Source: Diadema antillarum (taxonomy: Eukaryota). From it: DNA of 64,000 nucleotides. The stretch covers positions 2,418,001 to 2,482,000 of the forward strand of contig NW_027270975.1 in assembly GCF_040938485.1 (NCBI RefSeq). The letters are read 5' to 3'. Under the pieces are notes generated by a model. The model saw nothing but the letters and a program-made list of their open reading frames with translations, was not told where the DNA came from and did no database searches. Made by a program: the position numbers and the translations under genes. Each line of letters begins with the position of its first letter. The first letter of the stretch is position 1. Shown here piece after piece: positions 17,846-39,623 of this stretch.

Positions 17846-18665
17846 ATAGTTCAGTAGTTTTTTTTTTTAGATTGTGGACCCAAAATATAATATTAAAAAA
17901 GTTATATCATAGTGCAGAAACCAATTGAAGTACTGGGAATTGATAACATTATTCACAAATTTGTTGTGTTTTCTTTTCTTTTTTTTTTTTTTTTGCGCCT
18001 TACATTTGTACTGCTATAACCCGAGAGGGGGTTGAAAGAGTCAATAAAAATCCACACATCTACAATATATTTAGCTACAAATGTGTAGCTTGTACAAGTG
18101 ATTGCAGTCTACATCACTAGTTGGTATTACATGCATTGTTAGCATTTAAAGTACAGAATCATCACTCATTCCATAATGAGTGAAACAAGGACTGATTCCA
18201 GGAGAGTGTTGGTACATGATGATCTGTAGTGATATACTGTAGCTAGTTGGGTGGTGGACTAACCACAGGGAGGGAGTGGGTTAAACCAGTAATTTCTCCT
18301 TAGTGGAGTTTTATTGGCCACCTCCTCAGCTCTTATGCAAACATCTGCCTGGCTGCGGGGCAAGTAACCCCGTCGCGGGGCGCTGTAACACAGTAACAGC
18401 GCCCCGAAGCATCCCATACGATTTTTAGGAAGTACTGCGACGCGTACAATTCTGTCACAAACTCACCGTTCAAAACGACACATGGATTCGCAACAAAAAG
18501 CCACATGTTGTAATACCATAATGTTGAATATTTTAGCCGACTATGTATTGCTCACCATTACCTCCGAAAACAAGAGAAATCGCCATCATCTTTGCTGGAA
18601 CCCCACTCGACACTATCGACACTGCCGCTCGCCATTTTGAAAATATCACGTAAGTAAATTGATCT

Positions 18666-18690
18666 GGGCATGCGCAAATGAATATTCATG
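18666..18690 (+). promoter_or_regulatory. Candidate promoter module upstream of RecQ (NRF1-like GGCATGCGCA plus palindromic POU-type ATGAATATTCAT)
   Basis: CpG-rich region ~76-100 bp upstream of the ATG; mirrored at 38044-38149. Confidence 0.45.
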
Positions 18691-18765
18691 GTTACGTCAT
18701 CTGCCATATATGTACATGTACAATGTTGCTCGTAGTTCTCGGACCATTCGTAGAGTATCATCATC

Positions 18766-18939
18766 ATGGAGTTCAAAGATGCTATCAAGGAATTAGAGGA
18801 GGAGGCTGGAATTAAGTTTAAAGAGGAGCAGGTAGAAATAATGGAAAGCACAGTGAAACAGAAGGACACCTTAATGATATTGCCAACTGGGTTTGGCAAG
18901 AGCGTTTGTTTTGGTTTCCATCACCGAATCTTGGATAAA
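18766..18939 (+). CDS. RecQ helicase exon 1 (Q motif, Walker A LPTGFGKS)
   Basis: ATG at 18766; donor GTGAGT at 18940, phase 0. Confidence 0.92.
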
Positions 18940-36506: not shown

Positions 36507-36508
36507 TA
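36468..36508. repeat. (TA)n microsatellite
   Basis: Seen directly. Confidence 0.9.
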
Positions 36509-38043
36509 CGTGTATGGTGCAAAATGTTTACCTTTGATCTTTAGCCCATTGCATGGCCTCAAACTTTATTTATTATATGCAGAATCAACCTTTACCTGAT
36601 AATACTTTCAATGTGTACATGTAGTTTCATGAAAATAAATTCAGAAATTGTACATGTTGATATATATAGAGATGTTGGGAAAATGGTGGACTTGTAGTAT
36701 AACCTTGACCTAAGATCATTGCCTCTGATAGGCACAGCATATTAGTGCACTCATACAGTGTGCATGTAAGTGACACTGGGCTTGCATTATTGTCACCTTC
36801 CCTCCCCAGGTATATAGTATCACGATCATGAGAATGAGTACTAGGGACATGACATAATAATTTAGTGCTTATTTTATTCCTAATGCGAATGAGAAGGAAG
36901 AGAATAAGTGTATGAATATGCTTGTACATTACCATCACCAATACATAAAAGGTGTAATCACACACTCGTATGTATAAATAACAATATCAATATGAAGCTA
37001 TAATTGAGTGTATAGTGTTATTAGATATAGTGTCGATAATAGTGCAAAAAAAGACACTAAATGTTTTGAAAATGACATATATATAGGGAGCAGTGGAATA
37101 CAATCCCCATGACCATATGGATGGATCTGAAAGGGTTACTTTCTAGTTTTTCATTAACCAATCCATCATACCGTTAAGATGAAAGCCAGTCTAAAACTTT
37201 ATCTATATTTCATGAGAATGAAAAAAAAAATCCAGGAGAACACTGCAAAAATGATAAAATCAGATTAAAAAAAAAGGAAATAATGACATTCTGATATAAA
37301 AATTTCGGAAGACACTCCTTGTCCCGTTGCTATGAATGAATGAATGAATGAATGAAGAAAATGAAGGACTACTCAGAGTCAACTTTATTGATCTGTATAT
37401 CACAGTACATAGAAATTTAGCTTCCAGTTCATCCAACTTGTTACACACAAATAATCATTAAACACACATGCGTGCAGACACACACACACAATCAAACAGC
37501 AAGTGACATGCCCGAAAGAAAAAGACAGGAAAGGATTCCCATACGGTGGAAGTCTTTGAAAAAAGAAAGGTCTCTTTAATAAATAATCAAACAATCCTGA
37601 AACATTGAAAATAGACAAGACATGTATGTAACAGAAGTGTATTCAAATCAAATCACAGCAGATAATAAACATGAAGCAAAAATGAATATGAGTCCCCAAG
37701 AAGCAGAGCTTGTGAGTGGAGCCCATTGTGAATGTACAACATTTTACAGTGTGAAAGGAAACTTGATTTATAGATGAGATATCTGGGACATTGCCCCTGC
37801 AGACTGGGAAAAAACAAATAAATAAAGAAACAAACAAAGAAACAAACATACCCTCTATCATGAAAATCACCTGTTATTTTCTTAATCCGTCATATCTCCA
37901 GATGTTCATTATGTGTGCACTTCCTTTATTGCAAATAAATAATGAACCACACATTCAAAATGTGCTTTAAAAACGAAATTAATAAGTGCCGGTAGGCCCG
38001 ATAGTAAATCAGCGCCCAACATGCGTTCTTTTTTGTTACATCT

Positions 38044-38149
38044 CATGAATATTCATTTCAGATCTCAGCGAGCCGTCCGGGTTTTTTTCCACACGCATAC
38101 ATTGCGTATTATAGTATGTGCTACGTTTTATCCATATTCGCGCATGCGC
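38044..38149 (-). promoter_or_regulatory. Candidate promoter module at the element's right end (ATGAATATTCAT plus perfect NRF1 site GCGCATGCGC)
   Basis: 15-bp perfect inverted match to 18676-18690; NRF1 palindrome at 38140-38149. Confidence 0.45.
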
Positions 38150-39623
38150 TGTGTAAGTCGTACCACAATACGAAATGCGGTAGGACTTTAAAACCCTCGG
38201 ATAAACTCTTTCACAGGGCTCTCAAAACAGATCATATTGTAAATCGACTTCGCCTGCTGTGATTGTAAGTATCTTATCTAAGAGTAAGGCTACAAATTTC
38301 AGTATAAAACCCTGTATTTTGGTCTCTGGTCACCTAAATGCTAAGCCATATCAGGTGCTTCCGTGACAGGATAGGCCTTGCGGTGCGACCCCTTTACGGT
38401 ACGTATTTGTCCGTATGGGGTCGCTGCTGCGGTTACGGGGCAAGTAGGTGGGTGTGTGTTGATGCCAGATTGGCCAGTTAAGGGTACCTTATTACACCCC
38501 TCTGGCCCTGCCTCATCCCCTCACCCCTCACCCCCCCCCCCCACACCCTTCTCCTCCACTCTCAGCTGTAGAAGGATGATGTTGCCAGGAGCAGTGCATC
38601 ATGGTTGACTTCTCAGTCTTCGCTTCCGCCATACAGCGATGCTATGATTATGATATATTTGTGGGATCGGACAGCTGATGGCTAGCTATCACTAGCTGTC
38701 TCAACACAAGAGTGGAGTTCAAGGAAGAACAGGTCATGAATGTCCCAATAATGGAGATATAAAGAAGATGAAATACGCCCAGCTTTTTGATGGGGTTAGA
38801 ATACTCCTCTGGCTGAGGAATGGAAATATCATGTCATTGTTTCTCCTGTGCCTCACTATGCATCAATTTCTCATGAATTCTTTAATACTGTAAAGATGGT
38901 TAGAGGACTTCAAACTTGTTTGCTGTCTATTAAGGTATTTTCATAACTGGTAGAGTAATGTCTCTGCCATGGACTATTCTAATTTTACCGATAAGTTTGT
39001 GGAATACACGTAGGTTGTAACAGACTCCACCGCACTGGTCTCCTAGATTCCATCACATCTGTAGATTCACATCTTATGTTGATGGTCATCTATTTTCTGA
39101 GTATGACTCCTGCAATTTTTTCACATAATGTTTTGTGCTTAATTGAACACTTTCGCTGGTGCCTCAAAAATTTCCCTCTAGTTAGGATTTAGGATTGGCA
39201 GCTATGCCAGTGGAATAACACACCACTTAATATCGAGAAATATTCAGTTTCGGAAACTCTAGCAGGCGGTTAGCCAGGGGCCGTGTTGTAGCTGTCGGGT
39301 GCCCGAACCTCTCATTGAGGATCCATACGCAAGAGACTCGCACTGTCCTTGATCCGTTCCATTCGTTAACCCTTCGTGGGTATACTGTTTCAAAATGCTT
39401 TTGCCATTGGCAATGACTTGATAAAGTCCTCAACCAATGACTTGGGCAGTAAATAATGTGTGTGTCAGGAGATTTCTAAATGACAATGTTGCTCCTGTAG
39501 CGGTTTGATGAGAGTGGCTACAGGCATTCACCTACTGTTTTTACCTTGTATAGCCCCTGTTTGTACATTTTGATATAAATACATTTTGTGCTTTGACTAC
39601 AAATGCAGCTCACAATAGGTAAT

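Follow-up and report, generated by a model that had tools for sequence, protein, structure and literature searches.

A very young, multi-copy AcademH-type transposon of 20 kb in the urchin Diadema antillarum, encoding a RecQ-type helicase and a transposase with PHD fingers

The 64-kilobase (kb) stretch of the Diadema antillarum genome analysed here (contig NW_027270975.1, positions 2,418,001 to 2,482,000; hereafter the window, in whose numbering coordinates are given unless another locus is named) contains at 18365-38435 what we regard, with a probability of about 0.92, as one insertion of a very young, multi-copy cut-and-paste transposon of the AcademH type. The element spans 20,071 base pairs (bp), starts with TAACC and ends with GGTTA, and is bracketed by the 9-mer CGGGGCAAG, which was found at 18356-18364 and 38436-38444 and nowhere else when both strands of the window were scanned. 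Two genes, for a RecQ-type helicase and for an Academ-type transposase, hold all the conserved coding sequence (17 exons, 4.3 kb in a 20.07-kb element). An initial annotation, made from the letters of the window, had proposed a complete element with exact ends and a 9-bp target-site duplication (TSD), and both the ends and the duplication have been borne out by the unique 9-mer pair and by the points at which homology to other copies stops.

These other copies were reached by a HMMER search with one transposase exon, which led to a 99 % identical protein of 835 amino acids (aa), P0001 (XP_071483013.1 / XP_071490836.1, a D. antillarum "uncharacterized protein"). Its two loci in GCA_040938485.1, L001 (JBFRCO010000193.1) and L002 (JBFRCO010000047.1), are both distinct from the window, and both were found to be full-length, with BLASTN identities to the window of 99.67-99.68 % over 18365-38435. 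The L001 alignment (L001 6700-26766) stops exactly at the element ends of the window, and that of L002 (L002 6723-26762) continues for 4 bases past the element end into the flank. Because the homology stops at the same bases, the boundaries in the window are not fortuitous; where boundaries are set independently like this, the chance of a match at 9 of 9 flanking bases is 4^-9, or about 4e-6. The ends of the element comprise the following features:

18356-18364, unstranded: left TSD, CGGGGCAAG, just outside the end of the L001/L002 homology
18365-38435, unstranded: whole AcademH-type element, TAACC...GGTTA, from BLASTN identity to L001 and L002
18365-18406, plus strand: helicase-side terminus with TAACC and a GC-rich palindrome at 18376-18406, from DNA folding
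38385-38435, minus strand: transposase-side terminus with TAACC (on the minus strand) and a GC-rich palindrome at 38385-38424, from DNA folding
38436-38444, unstranded: right TSD, CGGGGCAAG, from comparison of the flanks with those of other copies

Both palindromes begin about 11 nucleotides inside the tips of the element, and their predicted folding energies (-15.8 kcal/mol, z -4.4, on the helicase side; -14.9 kcal/mol, z -4.7, on the transposase side) were equalled in each case by 0 of 200 shuffled sequences.

Two further copies, L005 and L006, were found via the 90 % protein cluster of P0001, which brings the total to five copies on four contigs (window, L001, L002, L005 and L006), all in unrelated flanks. 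L005 lies on JBFRCO010000193.1, 170 kb from L001 and in inverted orientation, and is truncated at window coordinate 31760, while L006 (JBFRCO010000305.1) is 97.9-99.2 % identical and keeps both ends; it carries a 3.1-kb insertion and an 896-bp deletion that takes out coding sequence. Such a unit, repeated with fixed ends while its flanks are unrelated, is a transposon; as the initial annotation had predicted, there are other copies, four of them, whose homology ends at TAACC/GGTTA, and the two genes are not confined to a single locus. Its further expectation, that these copies would have 9-bp duplications of their own, holds in part. L006 is flanked by a perfect 9-bp TSD, TGTGGGCCC. The flanks of L001 differ from each other, and its transposase-side flank, CTCTAGACC, is identical to the helicase-side flank of L005, so that the duplication is split between two copies (the halves are located at about 4.27 Mb for L001 and about 4.46 Mb for L005 on JBFRCO010000193.1). 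For L002, a search for a TSD partner or a paralogous flank found none, its flanks being unique and unrelated. An intact 9-bp TSD thus surrounds two of the four copies with both ends (window and L006). The split CTCTAGACC fits either recombination between two inverted copies or a misjoin of the contig through the 20-kb repeat, and a misjoin is plausible because the assembly keeps both haplotypes (1.75 Gb vs a 703-Mb haploid size; PMC13511894). The same retention of haplotypes, together with the lack of matched duplications around L001 and L002, could be taken to mean that transposition played no part and that the copies are products of segmental duplication, or duplicates of haplotypes or of the assembly. 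We find this highly improbable, as flanks are unrelated in all copies, and as shared end nucleotides combined with differing 9-bp direct repeats are unexpected of duplicated segments.

The transposon also appears to have moved very recently. Substitutions among the three full copies amount to 0.045-0.095 %, which is about 30-fold under the allelic heterozygosity of D. antillarum, 2.52 % (PMC13511894); the movement must therefore be very recent and the insertions should be polymorphic, in agreement with the young age proposed initially. The flanks of the window insertion, when joined, predict an empty site of the form ...CTGGCTG CGGGGCAAG TAGGTGGG..., and this empty allele may be present in the same uncollapsed assembly.

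The helicase gene lies on the plus strand and comprises six coding exons with GT-AG borders, predicted to encode an intact 415-aa protein. Splice consensus and RecQ motifs served to build its model, and the exon borders of a related element in Strongylocentrotus purpuratus confirmed it. The loci L003 (Diadema setosum) and L004 (Lytechinus variegatus) were dropped as guides to the gene model, the helicases there being decayed, with stops. The exons are:

18766-18939, plus strand: exon 1 (ATG; RecQ motif 0, Walker A LPTGFGKS), with E. coli RecQ as the sole PDB family match
19773-19917, plus strand: exon 2 (motif Ia), with GT-AG borders, frame kept and the border conserved in the S. purpuratus element
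20416-20554, plus strand: exon 3 (DEVH box), from splice borders and the S. purpuratus border
21449-21619, plus strand: exon 4 (GKSFRPDY RecQ signature, motif III), with only RecQ5 and RecQ matched in PDB, E 8e-6
22391-22513, plus strand: exon 5 (RPN motif, motif IV), from splice borders and the S. purpuratus border
23173-23668, plus strand: exon 6 (Helicase_C, motifs V and VI, four-Cys zinc tail; stop TAG at 23666-23668), Pfam Helicase_C 3.2e-15

In the spliced protein all motifs of superfamily 2 helicases, from 0 to VI, are readable, and so is the RecQ signature H-C-x-S-x-W-G-x-x-F-R-P-x-Y. The best PDB matches of exon 6 all belong to the RecQ family (WRN, RecQ, RecQ4, BLM, RecQ1 and RecQ5), and those to DEAD-box RNA helicases are much weaker. 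The core is followed at the C-terminus by a four-Cys zinc module, where the protein ends; winged-helix and HRDC parts are absent. In the three full copies the helicase exons contain no insertion or deletion, and L001 and L002 carry one substitution each. The pairing of a RecQ helicase with an Academ transposase, suggested in the initial annotation, is thus upheld by RecQ-family matches in PDB and by an intact open reading frame between the ends, and the Helicase_C profile named there was matched by exon 6. As a separate observation, helicase intron 3 includes a low-complexity stretch rich in poly-G and poly-A (20925-21305), in which several of the length differences between copies fall and of which a 41-nucleotide segment resembles 2184-2224 of the window, inverted, at 88 %.

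The transposase gene is on the minus strand, convergent to the helicase gene, and their stop codons lie tail to tail, 2 bp apart. It comprises 11 coding exons, again with GT-AG borders, so that the two convergent spliced genes with 17 exons (6 for the helicase, 11 for the transposase) were correctly called at the outset. In L001 and L002 the eleven exons reproduce P0001 exactly, and exon 1 can be read on for another 183 codons upstream, as far as an ATG in line with the N-termini of the full-length homologues P0004 and P0005, which gives a predicted protein of 1018 aa. The features of this gene are:

35084-35701, minus strand: exon 1 (ATG at 35699-35701; CxxC...CxxC N-terminus), from the open frame and P0004/P0005 homology
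33378-33544, minus strand: exon 2, from GT-AG borders and P0001
32271-32508, minus strand: exon 3, from GT-AG borders and P0001
30861-31242, minus strand: exon 4 (candidate first catalytic Asp), 382 nucleotides in the window vs 381 in the sister copies
31164, minus strand: private 1-nucleotide insertion, CCAACC to CCAAACC (plus strand), absent from L001, L002, L005 and L006
30046-30297, minus strand: exon 5 (conserved GD, candidate second catalytic Asp), Pfam DUF6589 8.6e-9 for the exon alone
29387-29524, minus strand: exon 6, from GT-AG borders and P0001
28508-28769, minus strand: exon 7, from GT-AG borders and P0001
27599-27877, minus strand: exon 8, from GT-AG borders and P0001
26728-28526, minus strand: two ING-type PHD fingers (P0001 residues 497-604; parts of exons 7, 8 and 9), from PDB phmmer, structure and pattern
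26526-26753, minus strand: exon 9 (end of the second PHD finger, DUF6589 resumes), from GT-AG borders and P0001
25824-25955, minus strand: exon 10, from GT-AG borders and P0001
24698-25675, unstranded: interspersed repeats nested in intron 10 (24698-25125 and 25477-25675), with matches outside the element, mostly in D. setosum L003
23671-24032, minus strand: exon 11 (stop TGA at 23671-23673), from GT-AG borders and P0001

The insertion at 31164 shifts the frame after residue 366, four residues past the candidate first catalytic Asp, and leads to a stop two codons on; the window copy has, in addition, a private Arg-to-Cys change at 35248 in exon 1. The initial description of a full-length copy therefore needs to be divided: the window copy is structurally complete, with both ends, but its transposase is, as assembled, truncated and broken, which would make it a non-autonomous copy. 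Within the nested repeats of intron 10, the three full copies differ by one substitution and by no insertion or deletion.

From this damage it could be argued that the family is already extinct, that its copies are immobile and that their near-identity stems from one recent burst that has ended. Besides the frameshift in the window, the truncation of L005 and the deletion and insertion in L006 speak for such a scenario, as does the small number of copies found. We nevertheless consider it unlikely, though by no means negligible, as the 1018-aa transposase frame is still open in L001 and L002, the helicase exons are free of insertions and deletions in the three full copies, and the divergence between copies is so far below allelic diversity.

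A different objection would be that both genes belong to the host, whether ordinary or domesticated, and that the 9-bp repeat is coincidental. NCBI indeed annotates them as "uncharacterized protein" genes, and a paralogous transposase (P0004/P0154/P0155) is at least 90 % identical across two Diadema species, with a decayed helicase at its D. setosum locus, L003, so that domestication seems possible in the lineage. For the window locus, however, this explanation is barely credible and we take it as refuted: there are five copies or more, spread over four contigs and with unrelated flanks, homology stops at TAACC/GGTTA, and other copies have 9-bp duplications of their own. Moreover, a comparison of the old copy L006 with the young copy L001 for purifying selection gave similar substitution rates for coding (0.37 %) and non-coding (0.44 %) sequence; such similar rates correspond to neutral decay after insertion.

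As assigned with Pfam, the DUF6589 domain, which we take to be the Academ transposase domain, covers residues 227-732 of P0001 (E 5e-31), in accord with the Academ-type enzyme proposed initially, and exceeds the length of the profile by about 130 residues. The extra residues correspond to two tandem C4HC3 fingers, the pattern being found twice. In phmmer searches of PDB the fingers matched YNG1 (7.6e-10), ING1 and ING3 (2.5e-9) and, for the second finger, ING2 (8.7e-7). Pfam runs on single transposase exons found no PHD finger, because introns split the fingers. The PHD finger anticipated in the initial annotation is accordingly present by its ING/YNG matches and by a twofold C4HC3 pattern, with a Pfam score that stays below the cut-off. 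Both fingers keep the C4HC3 ligands and the residues of the cage, namely a Tyr ahead of the first Cys, a Met, and a Trp ahead of the His, and their structural superposition on complexes of ING PHD fingers with histone H3 trimethylated at lysine 4 (H3K4me3) gives Z scores of 5.3-6.2. The acidic residues that, by residue numbering, we take to hold arginine 2 of histone H3 (H3R2) in ING2 are both replaced in finger 1, and one of them is replaced in finger 2.

A confident AlphaFold2 model of the transposase, calculated from a 23-sequence alignment (predicted local distance difference test score 81.6, predicted template modelling score 0.81), has as its nearest solved structures the P element transposase (Z 8.7, 358 residues) and Hermes (Z 8.0, 307 residues), followed by ISCth4 and then by Transib and RAG1 (Z 5.0-5.5). 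Most homologues conserve three acidic residues of P0001, D180, D327 and E708 (D363, D510 and E891 of the 1018-aa protein), which make up a candidate catalytic triad; if the triad is assigned properly, the pair of PHD fingers is located between the second Asp and the Glu, at the place of the insertion domain in the P element, hAT and RAG1 enzymes. DUF6589 proteins with double PHD fingers were found in Lytechinus, Strongylocentrotus, D. setosum, Patiria and Branchiostoma (one of them automatically named "ING4"), and in those of Ptychodera the PHD pattern was matched once. This spread indicates that the combination is old, and it has so far gone unrecognised in public databases.

Taken together, these features suggest a mode of transposition. 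The transposase would be a DDE enzyme of the RNase H fold that binds the subterminal palindromes and the TAAC ends, cuts the element out and attaches it to the two strands of the target at positions staggered by 9 bp. The RecQ-type helicase, with its core and zinc module, would act as a co-factor that probably serves to unwind or remodel the structured ends, or to aid the processing of donor or target DNA, and the PHD fingers probably tether the enzyme to, or activate it on, chromatin marked with H3K4me3. The window copy would need transposase supplied by its sister copies L001 and L002. It may be relevant that the NCBI models of LETM1 (at L001) and of a WD40 gene (at L002) start inside the element, which places two young copies at the 5' ends of genes; this is a weak hint of a link between the PHD fingers and H3K4me3, two loci being too few to conclude. 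A more specific scenario, in which the family is still active, the helicase opens the palindromes into hairpins or cruciforms as the substrate that the transposase recognises or cuts, and the PHD fingers render cutting or integration dependent on H3K4me3 in a manner similar to RAG2, would amount to a mechanism so far undescribed for DDE transposons; it is one we put forward as speculative and rather improbable.

Several points weigh against the interpretation of the element as a young AcademH-type transposon, or against parts of it. The two ends share an inverted repeat of only 5 bp, with no inverted match further in; L001 shows a TSD only if paired with L005, and L002 has none. Both gene models were predicted from homology and splice consensus. 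The 31164 frameshift could be a consensus error, all insertions and deletions private to the window being changes in homopolymer length. The Pfam score for PHD is 20 bits, under its 27-bit cut-off, the fold matches of the model are middling (Z 8-9), and the candidate triad was picked by conservation and predicted secondary structure. Finally, the roles given above to the helicase, to the palindromes and to the PHD fingers are ones that we only infer.

For users of the genome, the element has two practical consequences. The forecast that its genes would be annotated as host genes has come true, since NCBI lists them as "uncharacterized protein" genes, even fused to neighbours: in the models at L001, L002 and L005 the transposase is cut to 835 of its 1018 aa and the helicase to 230 or 246 of its 415 aa, and a model of 721 aa joins PHO4 to DUF6589. 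The public D. antillarum models should therefore be read with the warning that they include genes of this element as host proteins that are truncated, fused or extended. In the same way, 20-kb repeats of 99.7 % identity appear to lie behind an inversion or misjoin on JBFRCO010000193.1, which calls for caution about genome structure. We are aware of no bench study of Academ transposition, and of no explanation why one lineage needs a helicase. Near-identical copies, open reading frames for both proteins, defined ends and a matching miniature inverted-repeat transposable element (MITE) offer an experimental route into this process, and related elements in three urchin genera add to the material for assays. 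A probably active AcademH family is useful to specialists rather than very surprising.

Scans of the window for tRNA genes and Rfam families found nothing. Outside the element, a 109-codon open frame at 7302-7628 (minus strand) encodes a very acidic peptide with no Pfam match, perhaps a fragment of some other mobile element. At 46523-47967 there is a tandem repeat whose period is about 324 bp; it recurs at L002 27421-28860 (94 % identical), about 660 bp past the helicase-side end of the L002 copy.

Related elements were found both within and outside D. antillarum. In S. purpuratus, the element at L007 9531-23731 (AAGJ06000003.1; transposase LOC100893251, P0159) shares with the one in the window the convergent genes, the six helicase exon borders, TAAC ends, end palindromes and the double PHD finger. 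It differs in its length of 14.2 kb, in its perfect terminal inverted repeats of 321 bp and in a transposase that is 57 % identical; its TSD is the 9-bp GGGGTAAGC, and it sits within an rRNA adenine dimethylase-like gene model. D. antillarum itself harbours a second family (L008 8847-26793, JBFRCO010000004.1), with a 49 % identical transposase and an annotated 425-aa DEAD/Helicase_C gene. Its candidate TSD, CTCTAACGT, is of a kind expected about once by chance in that search, and is supported because the architecture of the ends matches (TA(A/G)C and then a palindrome); this element lies within a bZIP gene model. The same end layout is common to the element in the window, L008, L007 and the MITE. 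The latter is 347 bp long, with ends TAACCCCG...GCAGTTA and a GC-rich palindrome at each end, and is present in two copies, at L001:6344-6690 and L001:26899-27245. The copy abutting the L001 element has CTCTAGACC on both its sides, so the MITE and the 20-kb L001 element have an identical 9-bp target, and the second copy, 130 bp past the other end of the L001 element, has the TSD GATAATGAC. The paralogous Academ transposase mentioned above (P0004, P0154 and P0155; D. setosum locus L003, OZ188196.1) is 59 % identical to P0001 and has annotated isoforms; at L003 its gene model spans 72 kb, with a downstream helicase full of stops. It could represent either a domesticated gene or an old copy that no longer moves.

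By published descriptions (PMC10045372, PMC10799480), the element appears to be a new member of the known AcademH transposons, a lineage of the Academ superfamily. AcademH is said to encode a helicase and to generate TSDs of 9 or 10 bp (PMC10045372). With this lineage, the element shares an Academ-type transposase and a DEAD/Helicase_C helicase in one element, a 9-bp TSD within the 9-10 bp range, low copy number and an animal host; it is present in several copies in unrelated flanks. A match to the XPG nuclease, the mark of the sister lineage AcademX, was not found in a Pfam scan of the element's 19 open frames, and literature searches on Academ with PHD and on DUF6589 added nothing. What sets this family apart from the lineage is its length of 20 kb, its 17 coding exons, the repeats nested in an intron and the inverted repeat of 5 bp.

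Among other known systems, the P element, hAT elements such as Hermes, and Transib with RAG1 would have in common with the modelled transposase an RNase-H-like catalytic fold with a large insertion domain. They differ in having no detectable sequence similarity to it and in TSDs of 8 or 5 bp instead of 9. In the RAG system it is RAG2 that carries a PHD finger reading H3K4me3, whereas here PHD fingers are found inside the transposase itself, and the helicase is encoded by a separate gene. Eukaryotic transposons with a helicase also include Helitron and KolobokH (PMC10799480), in which it acts as an enzyme of transposition or as an accessory to it. Helitron, however, combines a Rep nuclease with a Pif1-type helicase and makes no TSD, whereas the element described here combines a predicted DDE-type transposase with a RecQ-type helicase and is flanked by a 9-bp TSD.

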